Positions 30,171 to 63,387 of a DNA stretch of 64,000 nt are shown here, piece after piece. The translations under genes were made by a program, and so were the position numbers. Positions within the stretch are counted from its first letter, which is position 1, and each line of letters starts with the position of its first letter. The DNA is from Bugula neritina. Taxonomy: Eukaryota > Animalia > Bryozoa. Under the pieces are notes generated by a model that searched no databases, was not told the origin of the DNA, and saw only the letters and a list, made by a program, of their open reading frames with translations. The stretch is taken from contig OZ037772.1 in assembly GCA_964035545.1 (NCBI GenBank), positions 9,916,618 through 9,980,617 on the forward strand, in the 5' to 3' direction.

Positions 30171-30377
30171 CTCCAACTCATTTTAACTTTGCTGGTCAGT
30201 TCATTGTGTATCTGGAGCATAGTTTTGTATTTTCAAGTAGTCCATCAGATACCTTTGTAGATAGTAAAGATTAAAATGCTTGTGCAATGATGTCCATAAT
30301 GTTGAACCGATTTATTGAAACTAAAACTGTTCTCAATTATAACAAAACTTGACAATCTTTACATAAAGAATAATGTC

Positions 30378-31004
30378 CTATAATCTATCTTCATTGTAAA
30401 CAAAATTAGAAAGTTCCACACCAGCAAATTGTTTATCATCATCTGTAGGTGGAAGACGCGTGCACTCAGTTATAAAGGCAAGCTGACAGTGGTTTTCTTT
30501 GCCTTCTATGAAGATTTGGAAAGAGCCAGAAAATTAATACTCTATAACTGCAAAACCATGTTGTAGTGTCTTGTGTTATTGATTGAATCATCTAAAAGAA
30601 AAATTGTTGTATCATTATAATTTTACTGTTAATGAATTAGCAAATCTACTTATCTTGGTAAATATATTCAAGAACAAATACTATAGTGTAACTCAGTTTT
30701 GGTTGTGTATGCTCCTTAAGCAAATTTACAGCAGATATCAAACTATATATTAGAGACTGATATAGGAATTAAATTTAAGCTAACCATGATGATGTAAATA
30801 GCTGTTGTATGTGACTTCGAGAACTCTGCTGGCCATGTCAGTTCAAATACACCAGGGTGATCTGTTACGAATTTCATGTCATTATTGAAATTCAGCTTTT
30901 TCAAGTGCCTCTTCACAACTCTGGCAGCATTCTGACTGCTCCTTAGCTTTCTGCGCCTGAAATTTCTTCTACTTGCACCATTCTTCTATTGGTGGAATGT
31001 TAGC
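30378..31004 (-). pseudogene. KolX / P2X7 C-terminal ballast-like Cys-rich domain, decayed, copy 1
   Basis: Pseudo-exons 31004-30785 (PIEEWCK*K...QSECCQ...VTDHPG...RVLEVTYNSYLHHH) and 30591-30378 (FCSYRVLIFWLFPNLHRRQRKPLSACLYN*...LPPTDDDKQFAG). These follow the WCxC..E..CC..ITxHPG..VL..YR...W...L...R..LPxC....R..P....YxG pattern. Stops and frameshifts present. Confidence 0.7.
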
Positions 31005-38115: not shown

Positions 38116-38119
38116 TTAA

Positions 38120-38330
38120 ACTAAATTTTCGTCCTTGGCACTGGTCGAGATTATAGAACAAAAACTTGTGATATTGCGGGCGACGCTATTTATGAGCAAC
38201 TGAAGAGAACTCTTCCGATGTTAGAAACGACGTGAATTGGTCGGAATTACCAGAAATGATGTGTTATTGCGCATTAAATTTTTATGTTCCTGATGTCGTC
38301 AAATAAGTACCCTCCTGCGACTAAAACATT
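38120..38330 (+). promoter_or_regulatory. CpG-enriched patch, candidate promoter/first non-coding exon of kinase-propeller gene A
   Basis: Many CG dinucleotides in an otherwise CpG-poor window, ~1.3 kb upstream of the first recognisable exon. Positional inference only. Confidence 0.3.
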
Positions 38331-39646: not shown

Positions 39647-42600
39647 ATGCGGAACTTACAACTATACTGCTAGCACACCGTCATTGAGTGAAGCACTTAC
39701 AATGGATTTGTCTGTTTCCACAAAAAGACCACCGCCGAAGACAGACTCAGATTTAAAAGGTGATAAACTCTAATGCTTAATATTTACTGCATATTTACTT
39801 GAATTAATTTATAACAAGCTGCAAGTATTTTTTTGGGAATTTTTTATTTTCCCACTTGGTGCTTTTTATGCAATTTTTAAGTCCAGGATTTTAATCAAAT
39901 TTGTTTCCTGCATTTGTGCTAATATTTTACTCTTCTCGGTTTTCCCTGAGATGTTTGACATACTGCGCAAAGTGTCAGACAACAATGCTTTGGGTTCTAG
40001 AAAATGAATCATTGGTTGATGCACAAGTCACAGAAGTGCAACAACAGCATTGATTCACTGCTTAGAAAAATTAGCTAATTAGTTAATTGAGTAAAGTAGT
40101 TCTTAGTAAAATAGTTATAACTAGACCAGGTCATGTAATGGTAATCATAATTTTACATGTTATGCTTCTGTTTAGTAACTTGTAGTTTAGTAAATTCAAT
40201 GTGTTGTTATTTCAATTTAAATGTATAATTTGTAATATTATATTGACAGCACATGATGCTTTTGGTGCAGCGCTTCCTGTGGATTCATCTACTTCTGCAA
40301 AGAGACCAAAACTGCAGAGTAACTCGAGTATAGCAGGTGAGATAAGTTATTGCTTAGTATTTACACTCTCTGAATTATGAATTTTAAGTAAGAAACAAAG
40401 TGTGTCTTTTTCAGTATTTTCTACTGCCAATTGTCACTTATGTTATTAGCTTAAAGATCACTAATTCTATTTGACATAGAGACATATGTACTAGCTTTAG
40501 GAATACATATACTATAATAGATGATCAATAAATAAAAATGTTGAAGCATTGCGCAAAGCTAAATTATATGGAAACTTCGTGTTTTAAGAATTCTTGTCAT
40601 TTCATGTTATGTATTATATTATGCCTTTATAAAAAAGTGAAATACATTATACTGAATATAATTAGTACGTTTTTCAAGCTTGTTTTTTAATGTAAGATAA
40701 CAGAGAGCACTTTCAGATTCTATTCTCTAATAGTTAGACTTGTGATAACTATAACGAAATATCATTGCTTCAACAGTTGTTCAGCGTAATTTCTTCTGTA
40801 AAAGTATTGTGTACTAATACATTTTAAAACATTTTTGATGTGAGCAACCTTATGATTTTTTTTCTCATTTATCTCAGCTTTGTCCTGTTAGGGTAGCAGG
40901 AACAAATTCACGCAAGTTTATAGCCACTATCCCTGTGAGAAACTTATGATATAAGGGGTTTTTTGTTAGATCGGGCTAAGGACAATGGTTCATATGAGAC
41001 ACAGGAACAATTATGACTGGATTCTCTGCTTAACATCACCAATGGTAGTTGTTGGTATATATCGCAGCAAAAACAATTTCCATGTTAGCAGGTCTACATT
41101 TCTTTATAAGATCAGGTTTATTACAGAGAACTGCATGTACAGTGTTTACATTTTACTGTGTTAGTGTTTTCATTAAATAGATGGTTTGCATACTGAGCAA
41201 AGGTTGGTTTTTGTATCATATAGAACTTCCCGGTTGAAATTCACTGCATTTAACAAGTTTGCTGTATAAAATTATATTTAACGTTTTAGTACCACACAAC
41301 AAACTTCTGGGTTCTGGATCTTTTGGAGCAGTATATACTCATGTTGATTGGATTACTAAACAAGTTTGGGCAGTGAAAAAGGTTGACCTTGGCATGGTTG
41401 CCAGCTCCTCTTATCAAAAGGTGAAATTGTTCATATCAAATAAGTGGTTAAATAACATGAAAATACAAATCTGCTTTAATAGAGAATGTTTTATAACTGC
41501 CAGTAAACTGCAAATAATAATATTTATTATAAATCTTAATTGTGCACTCGAGTAAAGTTAGTCTTGAACGTACTCCGATATTTTAGCTGCTTATTAAATT
41601 GACTGAGTTGTAGTTAGAGATATTTCTGTTCTTCACAGCTAACTATAATGTTTATCTAAATTCTACATGTTTGGCATTCTATGGTTATTCTAAGAACTTA
41701 TTTCTAGAAAATTGATCATGCGATGAAGGAAGTGAAAATGATGGAGAAGTTGAAAAATCATCATAGAGTAGTCAGCTATATTAAACATGAGTTGGTTCCA
41801 CATAAGCTACATCCAGGTAGAGCTTATAATGCTTATAATATTTGAGATAGCCTTTCTACAGGTGTGATTACATAAAAAATAAACTCAATTACTTAATTCT
41901 GACAATTTGATAAAATGTATTGCTTTTTATGCTTAGTCACCACGTTTTGTGAAAATCTACTTTAAGCCATCTTGTTTACTTGTCTAAAACTTGCATACAC
42001 TTACAGATGGCTACTTGCTAATAAAACCTTCTAAAAAATTATTTAGATATTTGTGTGTGAGCGTGCGTGCGAGTGCGTGCGTGCGTGTGTGTGTGTGTAA
42101 CTAATACTACCGGTTTCATGTGCGTGAATTGCTTTTGACTGCAAATATGAAATGTGATCTTCACAGCCTTTTAAATTGGTTGAACTACTAGTTTTACCCT
42201 TTCTTTTATTTTTTAACCAATTATTATCTCTGCTCTGAAATGTCTGCCTGTTTTTTCACATATGTTAATGCTATTGTTTTATCAACATCTTCAATCTCTT
42301 GTGACAGAGATACAGGTTCTGTGTATATACATGGAGTACTTGCCTGGGGGCTCAGTGAGTAGTCGGTTAGATGCATCTGGTGCCTTCTCTGAAAAGGAAA
42401 CGAAGCGCTGCATGAGTCAGCTTCTGGAAGGTCTTTCTTATCTTCATAGCAGACGTCTGATACACAGAGATGTGAAAGGTGGTTAAATTATTATTTGTTC
42501 ATAGGCATCAAGGTGTTGTAATTGTTTACTGTATACATCTACTAATTTTTTTTTTTATTTGTCAATAATATTGTTTACATCTTTTTTCAGGGTCAAATGT

Positions 42601-45600
42601 TTTATTCGATGCTAATGACAACCTCAAACTGGCAGATTTTGGTGTATCAAAACAGTTGAATGAACTATCTACATTCTCAGCTCGTACGAACACCGGCCAA
42701 ATAGGAACTGCTAAATGGATGGCGCCAGAGGTCGTTGCTGATGAAAAATACAGTAGAAAAGCAGATGTTTGGTTTGTGTTTGTTTTAAAACAGACAGGTG
42801 CCCTACAAAACCTCAGAAGTTGTCAGCATTAATTACATAATTGAACTGAAACACATTATGCATAAGAGTTTAAACAGATAACACACATATTGTAACGTCT
42901 TATTGAGATGGTCCGTATTCTATAGAGTTCGGAAACATCAAACAAACTGATCAAACATTTATTGAACAGCTTTAGCTAGTTATAGAATTGTTTTTCACTA
43001 TTAAAATGGTTTTAAAGTAAAAATATTATAGTCTCAAGTTAATCAGTCTTTTATTAGATCAGCAAGTCACTCTAACATTAGGTTTATCTGGAGTGCTTTG
43101 CAAGTATTTTTAGTATTTTTTAGCATATTTCTTAAGCTAACATTAATTGTAGGAGTGCAGGAGCTACAATGGTAGAAATGCTCACAAAAAACCCGCCGTG
43201 GCCCAAATTGAAATCAGTTCAATGGACATTTAAGATTAATCAAAAGCAAAAGCCAGAATATACTCTGCCCCCATCAACTAGCCAGACAGCCCGGAACCTT
43301 CTAACTGACATATTCAACTATGATGAGAAGGCTCGACCCACTTCAGAGCAGTTGCTGGCCCATCTCTGGTTCAAGACACTAGATGATGGTAAGCTGGTAC
43401 AATCTAGCAAATACTGTTGTTGCTATAAATAGTATCATTTCAGATGCAGCATATCAAGTGTGAAGTCTCTTTCTACATGTAGTATGCAAGTACCGCTGAA
43501 ACTGCCCGTTTTGTTGTAACCTGTAACCCTCTGTAAGTTCAACTTCAACCTGTCCGTAACTGGTCTGGTAGTATAGTACTGGATAAGGGCTTACTCCACT
43601 CTGATAATATTAATTTAGTGCTGCAAATATTTAAACTTCTCTATATTTATAACATAAAAATCATGTAGCTAAAGCGTTTTCACTATAATAGGTTTGTAAC
43701 ACTTTTATGGACTTTCCCCATGTATCGTGGCACCAGAAATAGTTGCATGCTTCATTAAAACTTAGACCTATAACTCAACCAGCCATATTACAGGTCAATT
43801 AAAAAAGCTTGTGTAAGTTGTGCTGCAACGTCTCAAAATAAGCCTAGCCTATCAGATTGTAGAACAAAAATGTAAAAAGTTATTTTATTTCAATGCTAAG
43901 AGCTGCAGCACAAGTGGTAAACCAACACTTTGCAGTTGCTATCCTTTGTTTAATTATTATAATTAGTAATTACTGATTGCCTATTTTCAATATATTTTTT
44001 TGTTGAACTTATGCCGTGCTATAAATTGTTCATATTTATAGCAAATGTGTTGCATCGGCTTGTCTGCATTGTTGTAGGTTATTCTGGTACTTTGAATAAT
44101 TAATTCATTGTAATTATACTAGTCAAATGTGATTATCACATATAATATATCTATATCTGAAGTGTTGTGGTGATATGTTCCATCAATTTACTGAAGAAAA
44201 ATTTCAATAATTAGAAGCTTTCAATTATTGGTTATTCGTGTAGGTCTTTCAGTTATACACAATTGATCCAGCCTATACAGTTTCGTGCAGCTGTGTGTAT
44301 ACTGCTTGATATGCCTGCTTCTTTGATAGCCTTTGTGTTCTTTGCAACCTGTAGTCTATGTTATGTCTCTTTTTAGTGTGTTCAGTTCAGTTAGTTGTGC
44401 TAAAATTCTGGTCTGTTTCAACAGTCTATAATTCATCGTTGTTCATTTTTTCCATGGCATCTCGTTTCTACTATTTTGAATAAGTGTATCCATAGCTAAG
44501 ATATATACATTATTCTGTATTTTGGTAGCATATGATAAACCCTCTACTTCAATCATTAGATCAGGTCCATTTCAAGATTTTTGAGTACAGTCTTTATAAT
44601 AATGTTGTCAAATCTGGCAAGTGCTCACAAAGTAAAATTAAAATACTTGTATGTTACAAAAGGAAATGGTCACTAAAACTAGCATAAGCTCTTACAACTC
44701 TAATCCTCACCAGCAGTTTTGTATATTGGAATGCAGCGTTTAATAAGCAGGCTTATTGACAGTAAAGCACCTACTATTACATCTCCCCTCATGCTTTCAT
44801 TACACAATGACTGAAAGACTTTGCTTTGAATAAAGCCCCAAGGTGAATGGGGATGTACATAGGACCACTTTTATACTCCTATATAATTTTCTTACTACTA
44901 AACCATGCAACTCATTGTAATTCTTCATATATTACTCTTATTAATATATAGACCTGAAGGTGGAGATGGAGAAGGAACCTGTAGCTGAAGGCAGTGCAAG
45001 TATCTCCTCTGAACGAAGATCACCCCTTATAGCAATAGAACCAATAGAGACTGTATCTATTAGAGAACTCGTGTATTCTGTCCATATTTGTAATGGCATT
45101 ACATATGTTGGAGGTAACAATGGTGTAAAGAGAGTCAACAGAAGTTATGAAGTAGCTGAGAACTTTCTTTTTCGTATTGAGGCCGGCTCTGTGAGTAGTA
45201 TCTCAGTACATAATGATAGGATATATACTCTGTCTACTGGCTATACTGTGAGAGTTCATGACCTTGAAGGGAGGTCCATTACCAGCTGGACTCATACAGA
45301 TAAATCAAAGTGGACAAGTCAGCTTGTCATCATAAACAATCAGATAGCTATTCCTGATTGGCTAAATAAGACTCTAGTATTCTTCTCTCTGAATGGGGAG
45401 GTAGTAAACACTTTACCCTGTCCTCTACTCACTGATGTTTCTGTACGTCTGTCTGCTGCAGATAATAACTCAGTTATTATATCTCAGTATCACTCATCTC
45501 TAGTATACAAAGTAGACACCTCATCAGGTGACATTATCTGGCAGTGTAAGGATGTGGCTAAACCTAGTGGAGTGACCTGCTATAGAGATGAGTTTGTACT

Positions 45601-45994
45601 TGTGGCTGATGGTACTAAACCTACCACACTCTGTGTACTATCATTACATACAGGTTAGTTGTCTTGATATGCATGCAGTTGCATATGTTCGCCATGGTTA
45701 TTAGTATATTATATGAAAACTAAAATCTAACATATACAACACATACAGAGAGTGGCCCTATTGAACCATGATTCCTACTGCATGTTAACTGCATTATTTT
45801 ATATACCAGTAAATATTATTTTGACTTATACATATAGCCAACAGTAGTCATGTGATTGTTACGCAGGGCAACTTCTACACAGAATACCTTTCGAAGATTC
45901 CCGTGCTATCATACCAGATCTACACACAGCTGGTTCTACTTTGGTGGTTGCCGGATCATGGATGCGCCAAGTAAAATTCTATAGAATAAAGTGA
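39647..45994 (+). CDS. MAP3K/STE11-type Ser/Thr kinase fused to a C-terminal NHL-like beta-propeller, gene A (intact)
   Basis: Exons 39647-39759 (possible ATG at 39702), 40250-40336, 41290-41420 (LGSGSFGAVY...AVKK), 41708-41816, 42308-42478 (MEYLPGGS...HRDVK), 42591-42771 (GSNVL...KLADFG...GTAKWMAPEV...ADVW), 43153-43388 (SAGATMVEMLTKNPPW...RPT...LL.HLWF), 44952-45653 (beta-strand-rich blades, e.g. KPSGVTCYRDEFVLVAD) and 45867-45994 (stop TGA). All splice phases are compatible, including phase 1 between kinase and propeller. The start codon is uncertain. Confidence 0.88.
40912..41047 (-). mobile_element. SINE family A copy, 5'-truncated, minus strand
   Basis: Reverse complement contains CCATTGGTGATGTTAAGCAGAGAATCCAGTCATAATTG...CTCACAGGGATAGTGGCTATAAACTTG. 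Confidence 0.7.
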
Positions 45995-47850
45995 AGGTAA
46001 ACTTACAATTTGTGTAAAGAAATAATATGCTGCTATATCTGTTGCTAAAATTGCAAACCATAATTATTATCTATTTGAATTGCTATTTTACTCTTTAAGT
46101 ATATTTGTTTGACTTTTCTCAGCGAGTTTTGTTGAGCTTCTAGCTTAGAGGTATGTTCACTCAACATATATTCAGTTTCAACAGTTTGCATATTTTGCAT
46201 TGTTTGCAAGGTGTTGTAGAACTATCACCTTGACAAGTACAAGGATATATTTATAAATGAAGCTGTGAATTTCAACTCACTAATAATTTTGTCAGATTTT
46301 ACTTTTTACGCAATATTCAATACTCAATATCCAATACTCAATATTTATTATTCAATATTCAATATTCGATCAATACTCATTATTCAATATCTACTTATAC
46401 TCAATATTTAATACAAAGTATCTCTAAAAGTTTATTTGGTGCTCACTATTTGTAACTCCTATTTCGTTCTGTTTTAGAACTGGGTGACTATAGGAGTTCT
46501 GTTCGAGAGTAAAACTATTTGTTTGTCGGCTCGAAGTTGTCTCCCTATTCACTTTCAGATGCAGACAACTTCTATGAAATTCCACATTAACTCTCTTTCC
46601 CTCGTTTTCATTCTTTTAAATTTTAAAATTTCTAAACTTCATAGATATAATATCTTTACATTGACTTTGTGTAACGCAACAAATTTTTATCACGTATGTC
46701 TTCTAGTAGCTGTTGGATCTTTGATATGTTTATGTTATATCATCGTAAACTAATATTTGTGTGATTATTAAATCCTTAGTGTTTTTATGAATGAAATTCA
46801 TAACATTTTTCTATTCTCATCAATAAATACTATAATATTTTATTCTTTTTTATTTAGAACCATGCGTATTTTAATTTTTAACTTCTGTTTAATGCATTAT
46901 CATTTGTATATATTGTTTAACATTGACATGCAGTAACTGTTACTTGTTGGAGTTGAGTTTCAAATAAATACTATTTCATTTATAATTATTTTGATTATAA
47001 TTCTGTATTTCATCATTTGTACATCTTATATAGCAAATTTAATATACTCACATTGCTGCTATTTATTGAAATTACTAACATTCAACTGAATCTCATTTAT
47101 GTGTGCATGAAGGTGCATATTATATAATGTTCTACTCTAAATTACTGCTAAATTTTAACGCCCTTATGCTGTTGAGTACAATTCAAATCTCTTTACCATA
47201 TTATGATGAATCACCACTTACAGTATATAGATGAAAATATTATAAAAAAATTAAAATACTTCAGTGCAGCTCATTGCAATGGTTTACAGAATATATAGTC
47301 TTAGCATAAACAAATAATTTGTGTTCAATATATACTGTTGAGTTTGTGAAATGAGATGTTATATCTCCGAATTCTTGTAATAGCTACACTCCTCCAAGAC
47401 AGGCTAGGGTTATTAATTTACAGATTTGAAAGTGAGCACACAACTCCTGTTGTCTGTTGGTCATTCATTAAAAGTTGCGTTCTCATTTCAATCATTGTTT
47501 ATGAGCAGACAATTCATATATGATAGATAATAAAACAGCTCACAGTTGGGCAATATTTTCTAACCTACTTTTTTAATAATTGCTGCATCAACTACATTAT
47601 ACCACAAAGCTCCTGTTACAAACAGACATTCTGTTCAAATTAAATATCAATTATAAAGATTTATCAAAGACAATTTTATCTGTCTGATTTAATAGAATTG
47701 CTCCCCTTGCTACAGCTATAATATAGAAATAGGCAGTTTTAACTAGATTTTGTGTTGATGGAAATAAATATATTGCAGGCATTATTTTAGCTTTTTGAGC
47801 TTTCCATCTAAATTAAGGGCTGTTGTTACTTTGTGATTTCAAAAGGCATA

Positions 47851-48267
47851 TGGGTCATTTTACTTAATTTAGTGCATGCTGAAATCTCCAGTTTTTAGCT
47901 ATTTTTCACAATTTAAATGGTAATGAGCATGGATCTTTGCCCAAAACTAGTAAAACACCAATAAATACACCAAAATAATCACGGTTCTTCTTAATTTTGC
48001 ATCATTTCCCATTTTTTTTCTTATTTATTTATCAGGAGTGCTGACCGTTACGAAAAAACTGTAACGGTATGTAACCAAAAGTAGCCGAAAAATTAGGAAA
48101 AAACATGGGAAATGAACCAAAATTAAAAAAAAGTTTAATCATTTAGGTGTAATTATTGGTGTTTTATTAGTTTTGATCAAAAACCTATGTTCATTAGCAG
48201 TTAAATGGTGAAAAATAGCTAAAAACTAAAGATATCCAGTGTGTACTAAATTAAGTAAAATGACCCA
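47851..48267. mobile_element. palindromic MITE (~417 bp) with TA flanks, Tc1/mariner-like
   Basis: TGGGTCATTTTACTTAATTTAGT...ACTAAATTAAGTAAAATGACCCA; arms stay complementary far inward; TA on both sides. Related fragment at ~7925-8000. Confidence 0.82.
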
Positions 48268-49592
48268 TATTGAAATAAAAAAGAGAAAGAAAAGACACGC
48301 AACCAAATTTGATTGTATAAAATATTAATATGCTGAATTTGCTTATATGCAACATGCAAAATATAAAAAGCATTAGTCTTATAATATTGACGTATATATG
48401 GTACAGTTTAGTATAATATGTTATAGGCTAAAGTCTAATCTTTACAGCTTGTATATAGTTGTAGGTATAACTGTAAAAACTATAGACATCTATAGTTTAG
48501 AAACTAATAAGCATAATAAGTCTGAACACAGTTTTAATCACAAACTATAATATATTTTATTTTATTTTTTTTTGTACGTATATAAAACTATGCAACTGAT
48601 GAAAGCTAAAAACAAACCTTGTTATATAATAGTGGCATCAAACAAGTAAAAAATATGGTGAAAATGAAAAGCATATTATTTTAAAATTTTACAACATTTA
48701 GCTACATTTCATGTTATGTAATACTGTGGCATTCTAAAATAATTGAAAATGCAATAAAAAATTGAGTAACCATATAAAAAAATTGATCGACAAAAAAAGC
48801 TTAAAGATAACAATATCACAGGCAAGAAAAATACAAAAAAATTAAAATAAAGTTTTCAGCAACAAAGTAAATAATATAAGCATTTTATCTTACATTTGAA
48901 TGGGCGGAATACATTATTGGAGCTGTTATAACTATGCTGTAACTCATCACACTCAACTGCTACAAACAGCTAAGCTAAGCAAACTATTTTCATAAGATAT
49001 TTAGATTTGATACATTAAAACTGTCATATGCTATAACCTAACCAATCAGATGGCATCTAAATTCTGCTTTCAGGAAAATAATATTTGCCTTTAACTTAAA
49101 TATATAAAGGCTATGTGTACCTTTTCATAGGCATCAAGTTTTATGTGCTGCCATCAATCAGGTTTTTTTTTACAAAGTATTTACAATCCTGTTGCTAAGC
49201 AACAAAAACAAGCTGTTGGCATACATGTTTAAAAGAGCTGAATAGTGTAATTTAATAAACTAGATAACTGTGATACCCAACACAGCTGGCATTATGACTG
49301 AGACAAACAAACAGGTGATGTACAATACTTGATAATCAAAATTTCATATATGCTAAAACCTTATCGATCAGATCCTACTTGCATGGCAGAGCATCCCAAG
49401 CTTTTCACAAAGCAGAAAGAAGTTTATAACAAGTCCTCAGCCAGATGAGAACTATCATTGATTGTGTAGAAAAATGAGATGACTGGTTAATAAGAAATAT
49501 TAGAAATGATTTACTCTCAACAGGTTTAGACTTGTCTGATATCAAAATAATGCTGCAGTCCGGCAGATGCTTCATCCTCCCCCACAGCTAGT

Positions 49593-52500
49593 CTAGTTTA
49601 TTTCATAGACTTCAACAGTTTGACTCCAGTATCTGGCCATCACCAGAGTGGAGTCTATGATACTCAGACTGTGTACGTAGCCATCTCCTCCTATTGATAT
49701 TCTAGATAGCACCTGTCCTGTAGAAAGCAATTTTAATTCTGTCAGTCCAAGTTATTTATTTTACCACCAAATTTATTCATGATAAAGATGATTGCATTAC
49801 TACAATCATATTAAATGACGATGCTAACTTGCATGTTTGCCTTATTACATTTTTTATTGTAATGATATAAAAAGCTTTTAATTTTTAAAATGTATATCTG
49901 TAAACAGATCATTTTCAATGAACATGGATACATAAAATTATCGTCTCGCTTTTACCTCTATAGTTGCCTCCATAAACAGAGATTGTTAATTACTGAGTGC
50001 TTCTAATTAAAAAAACAGTTTTAGTTAATGTGAGCAAACCATAAGAGAAAAAATACTAGACCAAATTTTAAAACTCGCCCCCTTCATCATACTTTAGAAC
50101 TTTTGCAGCAATGAGCTACAAGTAATAATTATTTATAGCGTTGTTTAGCTGCAAAGTTTTAATAATTGAATAATATATATTTTAGTATAATATGCAAACT
50201 CTGCATGTTACAATATCAAAGCAACACTGACCTGTATCTAAGGATAGGACGCAGAGCTGGTGTGAGGAGCTGTTATTCTCAATTACAAAGACAAACATAT
50301 CTTTATAACAAGTCATTCCAATTGGGTTTATCAGCTCTCTACATTTCCAGGCAATTTTACCATTTGACAGTCCAAGCTTGATTATGAGAGTTGAGCTTTC
50401 CTGAGATATGATGACAGAATTACTATCAGCTATGCATATTCGGGTTTGAAGTTCTTTAAGAAAAACACAGGGCAAAGTTTTTTTTACCTCTCCATTCAGA
50501 GAGTAGAATACTAGTGTTAGATTGGATCTGTCTGGAATAATTACTCGATCTTTAGTGATCACAAGTTGATTCAGCCAACGTAGTTTATCACTGTGCGACC
50601 AACTGTCTATTAAGTCACCTTGAAGATTGTACACATTAACAAGTGATCCGATATGCAAGATGTAGATTTGATCATTATATACAAAAACACTGCTAATCCT
50701 GTTTAGTGGAGTCAGGATAAAAGGAGAGGGTTGTGCTATCTGTCTTGTACAAAGGGCTATTTTGTAAATATTTCTTTCACATCCGACATACACACTACTC
50801 TCGTATGTGTTAACAGATATGCAGCCTGCTGAAAACCGTATGCCATGGATGAAATCTATGGTGTTGGGGTGTGAACAAGAGGTCAAAGGTTGAAGGTCAG
50901 CTTCGGCTCCTATTTGAAAAAATGAAAATAATAAAAATGTGTAAATTATTCAAAAATCTTGAAATATTGACGGAACTTCCAGCTTTCAAAATCAACCTAG
51001 CTCTAGCAAATATGATGCATTGGTTATGTAATATTACATTCCGTCATTTAAATTTTTTTGTAAATTAAATGCTTTGAATATCAAATATGTTTTTCTTTTT
51101 GATTATGTAATTAACTTTAAAGGACAGGCTTGAACACAAATCAGCATAACTCAATGAGCTTTATCATTTCAATATCCGGCTTTTTGATATCAGATATTAA
51201 TGGTAATTTTTCAGAAAATGATGGAAATTACAACAAAATAGGTTTGAAAACTAAATATTGGCATTCGGTTCACTTAATTTTAGAACTTTAATATTTAATT
51301 CTATTTTATTAGATGGGTATAAAAAAACTTAAGACATGACAACTCTTACCGTAAGCAGTCTCAGTACTTCCTGTATGAAACCAGGGATGTTTGAGCAACA
51401 TGCCAGCTGTGGGTCTTCTATACTGATTGTAGTTAAACGTGCTACTAAGAAAATGTCTTGGAGCTTCACTTATTTCAGACTGAAGCTTGTAATCAGGGGG
51501 TGCTTTTTGGCTAATTTTAAAAACCCACTGTTCCACATTGTACTCTGACCATGGTGGGTGCCGGCTAAGCATTTCTACCATTGTAGAACCCGTGCTCCTG
51601 TATAGCGAGACATAACATGAAGATATTGTAGTGCTTACATATAAATGTACAATTGGCAATTTATATAATTTTCAGCAGCTTCAATTACGCTACAATATCG
51701 GACTGTGCAAAATAGAAATTAAAACATTTTTCATTACAATGAGTAGTGCTGAAACACTTTAAAAAGTATATAATGATAAAAAGATGCAACCTGAGCTCAT
51801 AAAAGAAAATAATAAGAATATTTTTATATAAATGGAAATTGGTGGTTGTCCTGTGAATGGTTATGGTATGAATGGTTATGGTATGAATGGTTAAATGGTA
51901 TGCGTGGTTATGGTATGAATAGTTATGGTATGAATGATTATGGTATGAATGGTTATATTGTATGAATAGCTATATGGTAGGAATGGTTGTATGGTATGAA
52001 TGGCTATGATATGAATGGTTATGGTATGAATGGTTATATGGTTCGAGTGGTTATGGTATAAATGTTTATATGGTTTGAGTGGTTAAGGTATGAATGGTTG
52101 TGGTATGAATGGCTATGATATGAATGGTTATATGGTTTGAGTGGTTATGGTATGAATGGTTATGATAATACCTTCATAGTACTGCATCACCACCAGGCTA
52201 GGCTAGTTGGTAATTTATGCAAAAATAGTTTAAAATCAGAACATATAATGAAAATTAGACAGTTGATTAGTAGACAATTATGTTGAACATGTATCTAACC
52301 ATATATCAGCCTTTCTACCATATTTTTCACAAGCAACGACTTCTGGAGCCATTCATTTATCCGTTCCAACTTCTCCAGTATTTGTACCAACTATTGTACT
52401 TGAAAATGTAGAGAGTTTTTCCAAATGTTTCGATACGCCAAAGTCTGAAATCTTTATGTCTCCATTTCTAGCTAACAGGATATTTGAACCTGCAATAATA

Positions 52501-54506
52501 ATATCGTTCCAGAATAAAATTAATTATTTTATTATTTCCTTCGAGAATCAATAGACAAGATTGAAGGTGTTGTATTATATATGCATTTTCTGTTAAGCTT
52601 AAAGTGGTAATCATAAAGCTATATGCATTTAAGTTTGAGAACCAAACCTTATTCCATTATGAATTTATGTAGCCCCCACAATGCAATAATTGGCATGCTG
52701 GTTTGCAAGTTTCAGGTCTGCGGTTTGATTGCCGGTGGGTCAAAAATGTTTGTTAACACCATAAGTTCATACCTTTTACCTTTGGTATAACAGTTTGTAG
52801 AGTAAAAAATAATATTATTGGCAAAAGTTCTTTCTTCAATAGAATCTTTATTTATGTTTAGCAGAAGTATCTTTTCAAACATTTATTACATTTAGGTAGT
52901 ATTAAATTCTGTCCTATAAGTTTCTTTTGTTATAAAGTTAATATACTTAGCATGCACTAAATTTGGTAATGCAACTTTAAACCTCATGACTTTAGTTAGT
53001 CTAATACTAATCTTATACTCGATGACTTGTCATCAAACTGAGGACAGCGTTTTACATAAAAATCTATTAAAAGTAGACACTTTGAAAGAAACCATTGTAT
53101 GCAGATTCAGCTTGAGGGTCGAATATATTGTGATAAAATTCAAATGAAAGCACAATTCTCGATGATGTAGTCGAAAGGCACTGGAGTTTTTCTATATAAA
53201 AGAAAATAGCTTGTCTATAATGTAGGCCTAAATTTTTGTTGAAAACACAATTTGGCAATCTGAAATATTTTTTGTAACCTTTTATACCTCGATGTATGAT
53301 GTGCCTGCTGTGGAGATAGGAGAGGCCTTCCAACAGCTGGAAGATGCACTTTTTAGTTTTCTGTTCAGTAAAAGGTCCAGACGATAAAGCTTTTCTTATT
53401 GTTCCTCCAGGCATATATTCCATAAAAATACAAAGAACCTTTGTTTCTGCAATGAAAGGAAGTGTAAATAGCGTGCAAGTATGCCTGTGACAGTGGTAGA
53501 GAAGGGGAAAAAAGCTTCAGCACGGTTATAAAGAGCGCAAAAATTTTTTTAAATCAATGACCTGTTTAAACAACCTCGTAAACGAAGCTTGCATCGACAA
53601 TTATTTTATTGCATTTCAAATTGGCAATATTTTGATAACACTGTGTTGGCATTGAAATATTTGTGGGTGATTAAAAAATACTGAAAAGCTCGATCTGCAT
53701 GATATTATACACATTACTCTAACAGATAATGAGTACAGAAAGGCACACCTGGTCCATAGGAACCATCTTTCAGCTCATGTCGAATAAACCTGACTATACG
53801 ATCATGACTCAACTTCTCTAATATCTTAACTTCAGCTGTCGCCCTGTGAATTTTCTAAAAAACATGAGCCTTTATTAGCAAAAACTGCTTGTTGCGCATA
53901 CAAGAATCTTTTTAGTTGCTACTTTTGCTCACTAATCACAAAAGACTGCTTCATAAAGAAACATCAGAAAAAAAAAAGAGATTTGTGCCAAAAAAGAAAA
54001 GAAGAAGCTATAATAAATCATTTTTATAAAATGTTGAATAGGTTTCCAAAACTTTATAGGAATTAATATTTTCTTACTTTCTTGTATGTAGAGCCGCTAA
54101 CCATTCCAAGTTCAATTTTCTTTACAGCCTGCTCCTCTTGTCTCTCTTCGTCTAAGTACAGCCAAACCGAAGCAAAAGTTCCTGTGCCAATAAGCAGCTT
54201 ACTGCATGATTCTGTGATTCAAAAAAGATGTTTATTTATAATTTATAGTAGAACAATTTGACAAAAAATACTTGCTTTAATATTTTCAAAAACACTCTTG
54301 CTTCTCAAAATCATCATACTTCAAAACATTTACTTAGCTACTTGCCAGGCAAACTAAGAAGCTATTTTAATATACAAATTCCAAACGATCAGTTACATAT
54401 AGATGCTAGTATGTTTTATTTTCTATATTAACAAGAAAAAAGTATTTCTACCTTCCATATCTTCATATAATGCCTGTTTTGAAAATTTTGCTGAAGAAGA
54501 GCTCAT
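49593..54506 (-). pseudogene. kinase + NHL-like propeller gene B; HRD>HRG and an in-frame TGA in the activation segment
   Basis: Exons 54506-54452, 54211-54078 (IGTGTFASVW...AVKK), 53854-53749, 53446-53279 (HRGIK), 52489-52300 (DFG...GTDK*MAPEV; TGA at 52355-52353), 51597-51350, 50909-50232 (propeller) and 49717-49593. Same intron positions as gene A; otherwise open. Confidence 0.82.
51855..52165. repeat. ~15-bp minisatellite (GGTTATGGTATGAAT)n in an intron of gene B
   Basis: Direct inspection. Confidence 0.92.
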
Positions 54507-55520
54507 CACCAAAGCTGATGCAACATGTGGAGTCTAACTAGCTGACTTAGGATTCCAATTAAGGACAATTTAAGAGATGGAACTTTGTCATATGTTGATT
54601 GTACGGAGAGTATCAAATGGATTGCCCATCACTACGGTACAGCCTTTAAATATTTCCTAAAACTAACACCCAATATCAAAGTCATTATTAGCATGCATTT
54701 CCTGAAATTATCTAAACGTATTGGTTTAATAACAATTAATGACTGCTATGCAGTGTGCGGGTAGCATATTTGCTGTCTGTTTGATAACACAGCAAATAAT
54801 AACTGCAGTCGTTGCTAGTTAGACAAAAGCCGCAGCCATCCAGAATCTATGGGAAAAAGGAGAGCTGGAGGGAGAAAGACTTGGATACTACTAATAACTC
54901 TAATACGTGTAACTCTAACCCTTCTAGAATGCAGTTAATATAGCATGCAGTGACATTTGTTTATACATTAGCTGTGAAGGATTCAAAAGAAATTTTAGCG
55001 GCTATAATAATTTGTAGTTGATGAAAGACTAAAAAAAACATAAAGACAGCATTATAAAAAATGTTTATGGTTTATTAACACAACTAATGAATGCCTATAC
55101 ATTGAACCGCGTTTAGTTGGTCACGTTATAACAAACTCCATCCTTATCAAGTCATTAAATGAATGCTAATCAGCTAAAATCATTTTCCGGGAATAAAGCA
55201 ATATTTGAGATACGTATGAGAGGTATTCAAACACTTATATCTCACTGCATTTACACCTGTACATTGCTACAGCTGCTATTCACTGAATATCCATGATGCA
55301 TTAACTGAATAGATAGCTACTATTGACGTGCTCAGAGCTATATTACAGATAAAACATGTGACCAGAGAAACTAATGTACATGACTCATATGTCATGTGAC
55401 TTTCATGGTAACTAGAAACTGCATTGTATGTAGTGATAGATAGGAGTTAGAGTGGGTAATGCAAAGAGCTGTATGCTATCTACTGTAGGCTGTGGAATAT
55501 ATGAAGCATCATCAAAAGGC

Positions 55521-55525
<5 letters not shown>

Positions 55526-55611
<86 letters not shown>
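55526..55611. repeat. (TA)n microsatellite
   Basis: Direct inspection. Confidence 0.97.
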
Positions 55612-55613
<2 letters not shown>

Positions 55614-56683
55614 CTCTTCTCAAAACGGTGTAATCAAGTAAAATAAATCAGTATACAATAGCAGGTAGCAGTGACATAAGGAGAACTAGAAAAGAAAAAA
55701 CTTGCATACGGCTCAGTTTAAAATCCAAACCTATATCTTTGTATATCACCAACCAATATTTAGGATTCAGAAATTAGCTAAGCAAATAGCATTTCACAGA
55801 TGCAATAAATAGAGATATTTAAATGAGCATATAGAAGATAACCTCACCCGGCAACCTATGCAATTAAATGCTTTAATAAATTAAAGAACATGCATAATAA
55901 ATATTAAAACTTATGTTAATGTACTCAAATCAAATCTTAATCAGTAAAGCAAACACAATTATGGCTCTATAACACCTAGTACCTATCACTAGATTTATTC
56001 TAAACATTATTTGTGTTCTTTAGTGTGTAAATTAGTTGTAACAGCATGCAATAGGGCTTGAAACAGTTGAATAAGTTATTTACTTTAACATTGTTCTTAA
56101 AAACTTAATAAGCTATAGTTTACTTACCTGCCTTCCTTTACAACTGACAATGCGGCTGCTAACAAATAACAGAGCTTTTTAATGATATATTTACACTCTT
56201 ATTTACTATTTATAGCCGTGATGAATGTATACTGCAGTTAACTTATTTAATAGCTCATGCAATGAAAACAAGATAAACAAACCGCTACACCTTGTTAACA
56301 ATACACACGTCAGCACAGCTTTACGGTGTGCCTGATGATAAGAGTTTCCGATATAAATGTTGAGTCAGATGCAGCTTAAATAAACTTGGTTGTACGCACA
56401 AGGAAGGTTGAATCCTGTTTGAATAGTTCCTGGAAAGTTCCTAAAACTGCGTTTCCATCACATAAATGGATTTTTCATTGTCTAATGGAAATAGTTACAT
56501 AGAAGCCACAGCCATAAGTTAATGTAAACTTATTTAATTAAACAATTTAATTCATACTGACATCCATTCCCATAATGCACAGTCAATTGCAACGCAGTGT
56601 TATAATGCTGTAATGAAAAACTGCTGGCATCTAAAATTATAAAGAAATAAAACCACTCACAGCAAAGATAGTTTCTAAGGAAT

Positions 56684-56763
56684 GTGTAGTAGTGTAATGG
56701 TATAGCACACTGGTGTACAAGTTAGAAGGCAGTGGTTGAGTCCTGGTGGAGGCAATTATAGTT
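56684..56763 (+). mobile_element. SINE-like head, family B-like, diverged
   Basis: GTAGTGTAATGGTATAGCACACTGGTGTACAAG...GGTTGAGTCCTGGTGGAGGCAATTAT resembles 12793 and 16540. Confidence 0.45.
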
Positions 56764-58450
56764 TGTACAAGCTACTTTGGTCTTGAAAAAATACTTCCAT
56801 CTAAAAATAGATTATGAGGAAATTCAATTTGAAGGATGATGATCTTATTCACTTTTCAAAATGAAGTTGTTTTGTATTAAAAGAGAATGAAATTCAAATT
56901 AGTTTTGGAAGTTTTTTATATAGCTGGTGAATGATGCTCTGGTCAATGCCTGAAGTGCAACACCTATCATGAAGAGCTGGCTTGTAATGCTATCTGCATT
57001 ACTGCAATTATTTAACTTGTTTTTTGCAAATTGATAACAGTACATGCAATGTGGCTCCCCAATGCAAAACCTATTTACACAATTCTAAACTATTTAGATA
57101 GAGTCCGGAGTATGATTGCAAACAATTATCCCTCTGGAATTCAGGAATTTTCTAGAAACAGCTTATGTATGATTCATGTTATGTAACATGATAAGGAACT
57201 ATCACACAAGCATCAAGCAAACAGCAAACACTATAAAGGATAGGTTTTCCCAGGAAATTGTGTAATAATATAAGACGCCTGTTTTATGGCCTATTGCTAT
57301 GTGTGACTTCAAATACGTGAAATAATTTCATGCAAAAAGCGATAACATTCCAATGCAAACTGTCAAAACAATATTTGGCATACAATATACGTTCTGCTTT
57401 TTCTGTAAATGTTAGAAATGTCACTAACAAAAAGTTAACTGTTTCATTAATAATAGCCTGCCCCAAGTGACAATGGGCTGTTAATATTGTATAGCATCGC
57501 TTTAACAAGGAGTCATTTCAAATGAAAAATCAAATACTTGATGTAAAAACACAATATGATAAAATAAAACAAAATAAATTATTATCTATATAATATACTA
57601 ATATATAATATTATGAACAATATATTGGAAGAAGGTTTTTGTAGATTATTCATGGTATATATATAGTAGCATATTTCTAAAAATAGCAAACTGTGATACT
57701 TTACCTATCGGAATAGTAGCAATAAGCTCCTAAGTAAGTGCTCTAAGTATTTTGATAGGCACTTACTACTTCTATTTTTCTTCAACAATCAACAAATCTC
57801 ACCTATAGGACTAAAGCTGGACAAATATCTTAGCCTGCAGTCAGGCATGTTAACCAATATTTGAATAGCATTTTTGCTATTGACTTTAGTTTATCCAGTA
57901 CAGCGATAAATTCAGATTAGGTAATAAAGCAAACAACCTCCAGTTCTTAGAAGCATTTTATTAGTTTTTCAAGTTGTGAAAGAATGAATAGCATTTAAAA
58001 ATAGGCATTCTGTCAATGCAATGAAAGAATTGATTATACCAATATTCTTTCAACACTATTTTTATGCAGTACTGAGTACTAGTAGGAAAATCTGCATTCA
58101 ATTTAATCAATAAGAAAAATCAATGAGAATCTTAGACTGCAGGTTTTGAAAATGTGTGCCCTGGATGGGAACATCAATTATAGAAGCTACTGAATAATGC
58201 TGTAGTACAGAACAGTGACAGAAAAAAACATTCTTTAAAAATGAGTAGTCAAAGAGTACACCTAATCATCCACTACGCTGTTTGAGATGCTTTCGATTCC
58301 AATGCAATATTGCTTCATATAATAAAATATTTCTGCACTGTTTTTTACCAGTATTTTATTTTATATCTTAGACTAATTAAACTGTAAAAAAAACACCAAA
58401 GCAACATGTAAAACTCACAAATAGTTTAAAAAAAGCGCAAAATATTTACT

Positions 58451-58758
58451 CTGGCAATATTATTTTATAATTAGCATCAAAATACAGCAGCACTAGGTAA
58501 GTGTATAACATTACATCATACATATAAAAATAAGTGTAAATATTTGAAAGATTTTGAAAGGCAAAAAAAATTAAAACAGTCCAAGCACACTGAAAATAAC
58601 TGATCTGGCAATATTATTTCTTCTGCATCAAAATAGCACTAGTTGAATATGTATTATATTTTACATATGAAAAATTCATTGTGAGTATTTATAAGAGTTT
58701 GTAAAACAAAACGACTGACAAAAATTCAAAATCTATCCAAGACCACTGGAAAGAAATC
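58451..58758. repeat. old ~154-bp tandem duplication
   Basis: CTGGCAATATTATTT...GCATCAAAATA..GCACTAG...TCCAAG..CACTG occurs twice (58451, 58605). Confidence 0.65.
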
Positions 58759-59282
58759 AGAAAGAAGCTATCAAACAGCTGGTATCATTTTAACAGTAAT
58801 AACAAATCACATCATTATTTACAGGGTTTAATTTATAAGATATACTACACACTGAATACTAAAAAATTGGAAACAGAACTTTTTCATATTTCAAATAAAC
58901 TTGCACTGTATTATAATACCTTGCAGCAATTTGTTTGAGCTTAACAAAAACATTTCAAAACATCAAAGCGTATGGAAAAAAACTAATTATGAAAATAGAC
59001 CTAAAATGAGGCTAAACTAAAATTTTTAAATCAATTTGTTTTTTATTAAATGAGATATCTAACACAGGTGCTAGCAATTTATATGGAATGTAGTACTAAT
59101 AGGTTGAGCTAAACTTACTGTGAATAAAATAATGAAAATTGTCTTTTTTGTGGCTTTCTGAAGTTGATTCCCAGAAATGAGATTAAATCTTAGTTTTTTA
59201 AAAGAAGATTGAAATAAGAAAGATTATAAGAAAGAAATGATATTTATTGTTCATGCAGTTGTGAGAGTTGGACGCCTGCTTT

Positions 59283-62200
59283 TCATTTGATCTGGTAGAA
59301 CTTTACCCTCTCACTCCAATATCCAAGTATGACTAGAGTTGATTTGAATACTGCCATGTCGTGTACAAAGCTGTCTCCTCTATAAGCTAGTCTGGAGAGC
59401 ACCTGACCTGATAAAAGAGGTCAAGAAGGTCAAAAGGTCAGAAAATCAAAAGTTCAAAAGGTCAAAAAGTCAGAGTGACAAGTATGCAAATTGATAACCA
59501 CACTTTGAACTAAATTTAAAAAAATTCTCTGCTTTTATTAGCACATAATTTAAAGCAGTACAAACCCGTTTCAAGTGAAATTATGCAGAATGTGTAGCCA
59601 TTGCTGTCAATCACAAAAACAAACTCATCTTGATAACAGGTCATTCCAACTGGCTGAGCCACTTCTTTGCATTTCCAAATCACTTTACCCTGTGAAGTGT
59701 TAAATTTGAACACTAATGACAGGTGTTCATGGGAGACAATAAGAGAGTTACTGTTGGCGGCACAAATTCTGGTCAGAGCATTATTTAGTAAAGGACAAAA
59801 GAGTATGCACACTACCTCCCCATTCAAAGAGTATGCACACTACCTCCCCATTCAAAGAGTATGCACACTACCTCCCCATTCAAAGAGTATGCACACTACC
59901 TCCCCATTCAAAGAGTATGCACACTACCTCCCCATTCAAAGAGTATGCACACTACCTCCCCATTCAAAAAGTATGCACACTACCTCCCCATTCAAAGAGT
60001 ATGCACACTACCTCCCCATTCAAAGAGTATGCACACTACCTCCCCATTCAAAGAGTATGCACACTACCTCCCCATTCAAAGAGTAGAACACAAGTGCTTT
60101 ACTTTTTAGGTCAGGAATTACTACTAAACTGTCTATCACAGCAAGTTGGTTTAACAAGTTTGATTTGTGTCTGTGAGTCCAACTGTTAACAATATTTCCT
60201 TCAAGGTCATAAACATTCACAGTTGAATCAATAAAGAAAGTGTATATTCTATCACAATACACCGAGATGCTGATCACTCTACCATTTGTACTAGGAATAA
60301 ATGGTGAGGTTTCTGGAAAAAGTTGCTCGGAAGACAAGCTGATTCTGTACACTCCATTTTCACACCCCACATACCCAATACCACCATACGTGTCAACAGC
60401 AATGCAGCCTGAAGAAATGATTTGTTTGCCAAGCAGTTCTATGGAATTGGGATGTGGAGGCAGAACTACTTTTTCCTCCTGAACAATGCTGCCTGCGATA
60501 AAAGAGTTTCATATAAATACAATGACACAGGGTAGTGCCTTCAGCAACAGCTTATGTAATATGTTGTTAAAAAAGTAAAAGTAGCCTACTGGCGGTTTTA
60601 AGTAACCAAATTTTTAAATTCCAGTTGCTAGATATTTTAAAATATAAGAATGGCATTTCTTTACAACAGAAGGAAACATTTCTACACAGCACTAAGCTTC
60701 ACCCAAGCTTTAAACTTAAATCCGTACAGAACAACCTCTTCCAGTTGGCTCATAGGTGAAGTTTGGAATACAGTCTTAGGTCTGGATACAGTTTTAAATT
60801 TAATTTCTCTTATTAAAAGGAATTTGAAATTACAGCGAGATAACTAAATCAATCTCACCTAAATTTATTTCAGGAGATTTCTCTATAAACCAAGGATTAC
60901 CTAGCAATTTCTCTGCAGTTGGTCTGGCTTCGTGAGAATAATTAAATATTTTTTTCAACATGTTTTTTGCAGTTGCACTAATTGTTGGTGGAAGATCGTA
61001 TTGTGGCTCTGCCTTTTGACTAATCTGAAACATCCACTGAATCATGCTATGCTTAGGCCATGGTGGTTGCTGGGTGAGCATTTCTACCATTGTTGCACCG
61101 ACACTCCTGTGATAAATAAGTAAAACATATTACTGCACATACTATTGGTCAAAGGCAACCATTTTAATTGGCATAGTTTATCAATTACATAATAATCTAA
61201 GTTATACAGTTTTTCATCACTAGGCAATTATTGGTACTGTATTTGTATTACATCAATATTTTACTCGTAATATATAGCATTGGTTTAGACTAATGAGTCT
61301 ATGCCTTACTCCTAAGAGATTAATTTACAAGTATACTACTACCCTATCTGCTTCATCTCTACTTGATTTATGCAACATAATGCACTACAAACAATATGAA
61401 GTGTAATTTTGTTAAGAAATGAAAGGTTATTTACAGTCCGATGAATAAAGTTTTTTGGCAATCTGCAATTAAAGGATTCAAAACTTTTTAGTGGCATAAT
61501 GAACTAATGGTTGAAAACAGTTCAAAGCATAATTTAATATGGATTACAAATTTAGGGTGTATAAATATACTTTTTAGCAATGTAGCAGTCAAACAGCAAA
61601 CTTAGAGGTAGTATATAAAGGAAACAATAAAATTTAAAGATTATAGTATAAAAATGAAACAGTGAAACTGACAGGCTGTATGGAAATTTAATGAGACAGT
61701 GAAGCTTAAAAATAATATAGGAATAAAATGATGACGATGACGATATAGTATTTAGTCTACAGATGTGAGCTATGCTCATTACACATATAAAGCAGTATCT
61801 AACCAAATATATCAGCTTCTCTGCTATAGTCTGTGCTGTTAACCACTTCTGGTGCCATCCACTTAGGAGTTCCGATAGACCTAGTTTTTGTGTCCACAGA
61901 ACCAGAATATGGGGTTGCTGGTTTGAAAGGCTTGGAAACTCCAAAATCACTAAGTTTAAGGTTATCTTGTGCATCAAGTAAGATATTTGAACCTGAAATG
62001 AAAGAATAGTACATAACTTACCTGAGAGAACTTGTATAATTTTGTTTCAAGTGTGTAAAATAGGTTTAACTTTGAACTATTAGAATTGAAAGAATAGTTG
62101 AAGGGATACAATTTCTTGTACACACTCACTATATGACAATAATTACTATAACACAGTTATCTAAATCAAACTCGGTTTTTTTGTTTATATCATCTAGTTA

Positions 62201-63387
62201 CATAGCCTAAACAGTAAAAAAAGTTACCAAAACAAATTTTAACAAAACTTAAATACTTTAATGTAACCTTTCACATCCCTGTGCATTAGATGCTTGCTGT
62301 GGAGGTATGAAAGTCCTTCTAGTATTTGTGTCATACATCTCTTAGTTTCTTTCTCTGGAAAAGCACCCGACTCTAAACGTTTATTCAACGATCCGCCAGG
62401 CATATACTCCATGTAAATACACAGTCTTGACTCTGCAAACAATTTTACATGCATATGTCACATTTGCCTGCCCGCGAGTGCTCGCTTGCACACGCACGCA
62501 TGCACAAACACACACGCTCGCACATATAGATATATAGATTTGCGTGAGTTCATGCCTTTTATTCAAAAGTATTATAACAAAAGTGAAAACTGATAATTTA
62601 TTAGATAATAACAGCTTTTGTTAAAAAATAAGCTTCAATGATAAGGAAGTATTTAAAAGTAAACAGGAAATACTGTTGATGCTTATACCTTCAGAGTCTT
62701 TAGATACTTCATGTCTAATGAATTGAACTATCCTCCCATGCTCTAACCGCTCCATAGTTTCAACCTCTTTTATAGCTTTCCTAATTTTCTAAAACAACCA
62801 ATCAGCAGGAAACTATGAGTACCTAGTTTTGTAACAAATCATCCTATTGGCTGTCATACTATCCCTAAGCTGCAAGAAAAAGATTGTGGATATACCTAGT
62901 GTAAGGGAATATCTAGTTAATTAGATTGCTTAATGGTTGACAGTGACAAAGTAACGGAGTTGCCATCATTTTCTAAAGTATATTCCAAGAAGTTTATATA
63001 TAAATTTGTCAATCAACGTCTACACCAAATATATTTAGTTTTGCTCTGCTAAAGAATTGCTTTAACAACAGAACATATTTAAACTTTCAATTGACAAGCT
63101 TAATTATCACCGCTGTAAGAAATAAAAAATTAGAATTGCATGGTCATCTGCTTTTTGTGGCCATGTCTATTGTCTGATCCTTTTAGCTATATTTTTTCAT
63201 TGCAAAGAAATTCTGTCTACAAGCGACAACCAAAAAGAAATGTCAAGATATTTCACCTCTTCATAATCAGAGTCTCCAGTTGAGCTGATTTTAATTATTT
63301 TTACGGCCTGTATCTGCTGACTCTTCTTATCAAAGTGTGTAAACACTGCGCCAAAAGCTCCAACACCTAGTAGCTTGCCATCAGACA
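59283..63387 (-). pseudogene. kinase + NHL-like propeller gene C (5'-partial); 2-nt frameshift and a minisatellite expansion within the propeller exon
   Basis: Exons 63387-63257 (LGVGAFGAVF...AVK), 62788-62689, 62432-62268 (HRDVK), 61992-61804 (DFG...GTPKWMAPEV; ends GAT ATA TTT G|GT, versus GAT ATA TG|GT in gene B), 61106-60859, 60492-59566 (propeller with 10x28-bp repeat) and 59407-59283. Confidence 0.8.
59801..60080. repeat. 28-bp minisatellite x10 (GAGTATGCACACTACCTCCCCATTCAAA) inside the propeller exon of gene C
   Basis: Ten near-perfect units with one substitution at 59969. The unit is the coding sequence for LNGEVVCIL, which is single-copy in genes A and B. Confidence 0.97.

Follow-up and report, generated by a model that had tools for sequence, protein, structure and literature searches.

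Genes joining a MEKK2/3-like kinase to a beta-propeller of predicted NHL type in the bryozoan Bugula neritina

In a 64,000-nucleotide stretch of Bugula neritina DNA (the window), we identified genes in which a MEKK2/3-like kinase of the STE11 group is followed in frame by a beta-propeller. This kinase-propeller fusion is real, transcribed and lineage-specific. The reading that we favour, which we regard as evenly balanced between right and wrong, is that the genes form a small Bugula family of cytosolic sensor-kinases that arose by exon shuffling, in which the propeller would bind a variable non-self ligand, cluster the kinase and so start signalling. The original prediction, made from the letters of the window alone, described the fusion as triplicated; the three window copies stand, but the count does not, since two more kinase-propeller pairs (copies 4 and 5) lie beyond the window, at C8 9.99 and 10.01 Mb.

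Gene structure, alleles and transcripts

Copy 1 is encoded on the plus strand by nine exons (39647-45994) that form an open frame of 618 codons (Table 1). In all three window genes the last kinase exon ends in phase 1 and is joined in frame to a propeller exon and a closing exon, as had been proposed, with AG/GT at every junction. The propeller exons have 234, 226 and 225 codons in copies 1-3, respectively (the repeat array of copy 3 excluded), and the closing exons 41-42 codons. The N-terminal tail of copy 1 is a low-complexity segment of about 66 residues, with the first in-frame ATG at 39702; an additional small 5' exon belongs to this gene, and the RNA carries 70 unplaced 5' letters. The Gly-rich loop, the AVK lysine and the HRD, DFG and APE motifs of the copy 1 kinase are all intact, with a phase-1 donor at the end of the domain. 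No transmembrane segment is present in copy 1, in agreement with the prediction, because the 19-residue hydropathy peaks at 1.27, within the propeller. One of the copy 1 introns contains a short high-copy interspersed repeat (40904-41045), the contig depth of which is very high in the RNA runs.

Table 1. Positions of the described features in the window
Feature	Position	Strand	Remarks
Dispersed DNA element of 5.26 kb, twice in tandem; terminal inverted repeats, TTAA flanks	27612-38120	.	just upstream of copy 1
CpG-rich stretch	38120-38330	+	also conserved in a second sample; may be the copy 1 promoter or first exon
Copy 1, N-terminal tail exons	39647-39759, 40250-40336	+	RNA joint 39755-40247
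Copy 1, kinase, five exons	41290-41420, 41708-41816, 42308-42478, 42591-42771, 43153-43388	+	RNA runs show four spliced joints
Copy 1, propeller exon (linker and five blades; predicted NHL fold)	44952-45653	+	234 codons; TRIM-derived; top face variable
Copy 1, closing exon and stop	45867-45994	+	42 codons; outside RNA coverage and fold model
Copy 2, kinase-propeller gene, seven exons found	49593-54211	-	broken here; open 547-codon allele in another sample
Copy 3, kinase-propeller gene, seven exons found	59283-63387	-	broken here; open 542-codon allele in another sample
Tandem array (28 bp x 10.3) within the propeller exon of copy 3	59798-60085	-	in-frame stops; single unit in other sample

Splicing across the domain boundary was observed in RNA. 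In a contig from run X3 (depth 4.5, short side of 53 letters), 43385 is followed by seven letters and then by 44956, which corresponds to the junction of 43388 with 44952, and run X1 contains a second, looser joint, from 43382 to 45076. The seven junction letters match copy 4, outside the window, and not copy 1; the transcript therefore comes from copy 4 or from another allele. The kinase-propeller splice is thus supported in RNA for at least one family member, by this one contig and the looser joint: the homologous junction is spliced as expected, but the support is not specific to copy 1. Separate genes, with the kinase reading through to the stop at 43432, were rejected as the main form, since every copy and allele retains the donor and the RNA joint was seen. 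The read-through tails past the kinase donor differ among the copies (15, 4 and 3 residues), and a minor kinase-only isoform may exist beside the fused form.

Copies 2 and 3 carry lesions in this assembly. In copy 2, HRG stands in place of HRD (53288-53286), and the tryptophan that precedes MAPE is replaced by a TGA at 52355, so that the kinase motifs named in the original prediction are intact in copy 1 but not in this allele of copy 2. In copy 3, two extra bases near 61806 shift the frame at the end of exon 61992-61804, and the array within the propeller exon contains nine extra 28-bp units in comparison with the other sample. A Logan contig of run SRR4020083, syntenic with window positions 45.6-63.6 kb, has both copies fully open, and active-type kinase motifs (Gly loop, Lys, HRD, DFG, APE) are present in these intact alleles; therefore, the lesions are haplotype-specific or recent, and the view of copies 2 and 3 as old fixed pseudogenes was rejected. 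A consensus error is an unlikely cause of the lesions, the QV of the tzBugNeri2.1 assembly being 53.7 (PMC11480708). Between the window and SRR4020083 alleles, the pN/pS values of the kinase and the propeller are 0.31 and 0.36 for copy 2, and 0.21 and 0.26 for copy 3; both domains of these copies are under purifying selection between samples. The original prediction had missed these lesions. Copies 2 and 3 could be a conserved pair of greater age, which would act as helpers or bind a stable ligand and which some haplotypes can lose.

The kinase-propeller order was also found in three other data sets, namely the 2020 assembly (GCA_010799875.2), JGI contig L059 and the SRR4020083 Logan contig. 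The kinase leads in phase into the propeller in the 2020 assembly as well, where the intron between them contains a Gypsy-type LTR retrotransposon on the opposite strand (L047:13000-20400). This insertion probably explains why the 2020 gene model stops at the kinase: the GenBank model is a 167-residue 'MAP3K2' without the propeller, and current annotation thus misses the fusion. The 5.26-kb element upstream of copy 1, whose tandem copies are 99.9% identical and which has at least 40 genomic copies at 91-100% identity, is absent from L059. In this insertion-free allele, about 1.8 kb separate the last Bcl-2-like exon, with the stop of the previous gene, from exon 1 of copy 1, after which the kinase leads into the propeller in phase. 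A large N-terminal domain would not fit into this gap, so a large upstream domain on copy 1 was rejected and the kinase is N-terminal. The tandem Bcl-2-like genes occupy window positions 1-27170 (plus strand), upstream of the 5.26-kb repeats; their exons include a BH1-type NWGR at 25519 and BH2-type motifs near 2569, 5825, 17023, 21800 and 26249, and one of the genes has a long Ala/Lys/Ser-rich repeat tail (22244-22921). Their Pfam matches (E 0.001-0.017) fell below the cut-off.

Origins of the kinase and the propeller

Sixteen places in the genome match the last kinase exon, and at five of them a propeller exon follows at a distance of 0.4-1.6 kb. The naive chance of five of 16 kinase exons having a propeller within 1.6 kb downstream is 7e-13, a value that does not apply to five independent events because the copies are related. 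Two other kinase exons have caspase exons within about 1 kb, connected via a phase-1 linker exon, and another precedes a second kinase, forming a tandem double kinase (L045/L044, C8:9.098-9.107 Mb). At the caspase-linked loci (L036, C6:13.625-13.628 Mb, minus strand; L037, C1:33.270-33.273 Mb, plus strand), the sister kinase is followed by an acidic linker exon and then by the caspase exons; the two kinases belong to different subclades, so there were possibly two caspase fusions. Caspase domains have at least 177 matches genome-wide, a large expansion. On a related contig, a 297-codon ORF lies behind the second kinase (L060:2484-3374); it has no Pfam or Atlas match, and a trypsin-like identity found no support. 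Six further kinases of the clade, L034, L035, L039, L040, L041 (C8:9.68-9.72 Mb) and L042 (C5:13.90 Mb), have no propeller or caspase match nearby; each has a candidate phase-1 donor, and two of the six read DLG for DFG.

In the kinase tree, L046 (C1), in which the kinase ends at a stop, clusters with the MAP3K2/3 sequences of Lingula, Priapulus and frog (support 91/95), and the other 15 kinases, including the window copies, form a separate Bugula clade (90/95), the deeper placement of which is weak. Judged from sequence, L046 is the true MEKK2/3 orthologue, and the window kinases are not orthologues. The predicted likeness to MEKK2/3 was nonetheless confirmed, as these are the nearest named kinases (42-47% identity in the C-lobe region); against the genome's own MEKK2/3 orthologue, the substrate-binding C-lobe of the fusion kinases is 39-46% identical. 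A caspase-linked kinase is the sister of the kinase of copy 5 in this tree (99/93), and the monophyly of the propeller-linked kinases was rejected (AU p=0.029); because copy 5 covered only 38% of the columns, partner swapping by the kinase is suggestive only. The presence of sister kinases on caspases or in tandem indicates a shuffled kinase cassette.

The propeller has about 150 matches in the genome, which is a lower bound. Its closest paralogues end TRIM genes: on two JGI contigs, a RING, two B-box-type exons and coiled-coil exons stand ahead of the propeller, and the last coiled-coil exon precedes a propeller at about 20 genome loci, the Pfam scans of the genome for B-box and RING being too insensitive to map the TRIM heads. 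[quoted passage not shown] The propeller and closing exons of the fusion genes match Bugula TRIM genes, with 73% identity to one of them, and the 3' half of the copy 1 propeller exon shares about 90% DNA identity with TRIM exons. In the propeller tree, which has no outside outgroup, copies 1, 4 and 5 fall among TRIM propellers, with copy 5 sister to one TRIM (96/91), and copies 2 and 3 form a distant pair. The propellers of copies 1, 4 and 5 derive from the expanded TRIM family, and the kinase replaces the RING-B-box-coiled coil part. Across the paralogous fusions, the propellers are 41-47% identical and the two-domain frame is kept. Exon shuffling had been predicted, and the separate trees of the two domains, with kinase sisters on caspases and propellers from TRIM genes, agree with it.

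The AlphaFold model of the copy 1 propeller exon (pLDDT 81.6) has five blades. Its best structural match is the NHL domain of Brat (Z 20.1, rmsd 2.6, 207 aligned), and Mei-P26 and TRIM71 were matched as well; sequence identity to these NHL domains is only 10-15%. The language-model neighbours of the propeller are NHL clusters (0.93), and none of 45 propeller exons matched Pfam NHL (PF01436) at E 0.05. The model points to an NHL-type beta-propeller fold, in which the closing exon would provide the sixth blade. Database searches and folding were run exon by exon.

Selection on the propeller top face and the proposed function

Between copies 1 and 4, dN/dS is 0.32 for the kinase and 1.07 for the propeller (Fisher p=0.012). 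The propeller was partitioned by the strands of the AlphaFold model, and the top face was taken as loops b-c and d-a, as defined for NHL propellers (PMC4015489). For this pair, pN/pS is 3.36 on the top face, 0.83 on the bottom and 0.45 in the strands, and residue changes affect 29 of 67 top-face positions versus 16 of 127 elsewhere (p=4e-6). In the syntenic L059 allele the changes number 36 of 70 and 31 of 127, respectively, and the same bias was found in the L059 and 2020-assembly alleles (p=1.6e-4 and 0.015); the 2020 assembly is 93% identical to copy 4 in the kinase and only 53% in the propeller. Over four kinase-linked propellers the top-face pN/pS is 1.16 (P=0.18), and copies 1 and 4 are the only pair with a value significantly above 1. 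In these two copies, change on the ligand face outpaces that at silent sites, and the kinase is conserved, under purifying selection. The suggested comparison of top face and kinase core thus came out as anticipated for this pair, and the prediction of a variable propeller holds here but not for copies 2 and 3, which are conserved. Surface loops are more variable in any propeller, and the 3' propeller half matches TRIM exons closely, so some of the variation may have come in by gene conversion.

A duplicated MEKK2/3-like cassette with a phase-1 end thus sits on the propeller and closing exons known otherwise from TRIM genes. In the mechanism that we propose, the propeller top face would bind a changing non-self ligand, for which protein or glycan seems more likely than RNA; selection on the top face gives recognition of a pathogen ligand indirect support only. 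As the TRIM coiled coil is absent, clustering would come from the binding of a repetitive target, whereupon the assembled kinase domains would undergo activation-loop trans-autophosphorylation, as MEKK2/3 do. The output might be MAP2K/stress-kinase, NF-kB or cell-death signalling. We count in favour of the sensor-kinase reading that sister kinases precede caspase exons, that Bcl-2-like genes are adjacent and that related snail kinases are joined to the immune GTPase AIG1. Such a protein may be a one-piece intracellular sensor with phosphorylation instead of ubiquitin as its output.

Another explanation, which we consider unlikely, is that the kinase directly phosphorylates a foreign or host protein brought to it by the propeller, without a MAPK cascade, as a counterpart of a TRIM ligase that ubiquitinates its cargo. 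The kinase stands in the place of the RING effector, its C-lobe has drifted from MEKK2/3 to the extent given above, and a variable top face fits equally well; however, the sister kinases on caspases or in tandem bear more resemblance to signalling switches. It is quite improbable that the kinase instead serves as a bait for effectors that attack MEKK2/3-type kinases, with the propeller coupling it to TRIM or caspase partners. A decoy idea was proposed for some plant kinase fusions (bioRxiv 10.1101/2025.07.14.664643), and 15 diverged kinase exons beside one true MEKK2/3 would suit it, as would the partner swapping suggested by the AU test, but the diversifying change is on the propeller, not on the kinase, and the catalytic motifs are kept.

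We give still less credence to the possibility that the genes are expressed but dispensable chimeras, by-products of a recombining cluster whose variation was copied from selected TRIM paralogues by gene conversion. This haplotype has lesions in two of the three window copies, there are transposons within or next to the genes, and both the 3' half of the copy 1 propeller and the sister relation of copy 5 point towards TRIM genes; against this, comparison between samples shows purifying selection on kinase and propeller alike in copies 2 and 3 (pN/pS 0.21-0.36), and the two-domain frame is kept among paralogues despite their propeller divergence. An RNA-binding regulator like Brat or TRIM71, in which the propeller would bind a single-stranded RNA motif and localise the kinase there, is the reading to which we assign very little probability. 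Brat, Mei-P26 and TRIM71, whose NHL domains bind RNA, give the best structural matches, and four basic top-face positions are fairly conserved. The top-face net charge of the four kinase-linked copies, however, is +1, -3, -6 and 0 (five blades, calculated from sequence only), whereas the top faces of RNA-binding NHL domains are electropositive (PMC4015489), which argues against Brat-like RNA binding, as do the low identity to those domains and the missing Pfam NHL match. RNA, named in the original prediction among the possible ligands, is thus disfavoured.

Comparison with known systems

Animals without antibodies depend on expanded germline receptor families, whose recognition domains are wired to outputs. 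In Bugula, the same variable propeller stands on a ubiquitin ligase in many genes and, in five others, on a kinase that is found on caspases elsewhere; the system is compact, and its ligand, activation and output are addressable with single recombinant proteins. No animal kinase-NHL fusion was found in the proteins and literature searched, in line with the expectation that this is not an already widespread annotated family; these searches were of limited reach. None of the 176 proteins from the kinase profile search has a propeller, beyond single-exon calls the propeller was absent from the proteins of up to 597 residues searched, and a metagenome scan with the kinase profile returned distant loci only.

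[quoted passage not shown] The fusion kinases have the same catalytic motifs as MEKK2/MEKK3 (MAP3K2/3) of the STE11 group, in which a PB1 region is N-terminal and the kinase C-terminal, but here the kinase is N-terminal and followed by the propeller, with no room for a PB1 regulatory region. PknD of Mycobacterium tuberculosis combines a Ser/Thr kinase with a six-bladed NHL sensor (PMC4015489), which the Bugula propeller matches with Z 17.8. As had been stated, it is an analogue in architecture only: PknD is bacterial, membrane-spanning, with an extracellular sensor, and of independent origin, whereas the Bugula fusion has no transmembrane helix.

In some snail and nemertean proteins, too, a MEKK2/3-like kinase is joined to an immune-type module, AIG1/GIMAP or DED, although the partners differ from those in Bugula and the kinase of the snail kinase-GIMAP protein groups with MEKK2/3, not with the Bugula clade. 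The kinase-AIG1 fusion has been described in snails (PMC7053062), and among the proteins that we retrieved (P0140, P0097, P0170, P0066) were MEKK2/3-like kinases with AIG1/GIMAP in Biomphalaria and Bulinus, with DED and SEA in Lineus, and in tandem in Physella. Kinase shuffling onto immune modules is therefore known in lophotrochozoans. The kinase fusion proteins and tandem kinases of cereals (e.g. WTK4) likewise combine a cytosolic kinase with a non-kinase domain, and comprise a kinase and a variable recognition domain brought together in independent fusion events (bioRxiv 10.1101/2025.07.14.664643, 10.1101/2025.08.26.672365). The likeness is one of analogy only, as the cereal proteins are plant kinases of other families with demonstrated function, whereas the function of the Bugula fusion is a predicted one. 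By this analogy, we tentatively raise the idea, which we think possible but somewhat improbable, that the Bugula genes are an animal counterpart of the cereal kinase-fusion immune receptors. A mobile MEKK-like cassette would then have been placed on sensors (TRIM propellers refreshed from paralogues) and on effectors (caspases and second kinases), yielding sensor-helper sets for non-self recognition, and the similar snail and nemertean fusions would make this a recurrent lophotrochozoan strategy.
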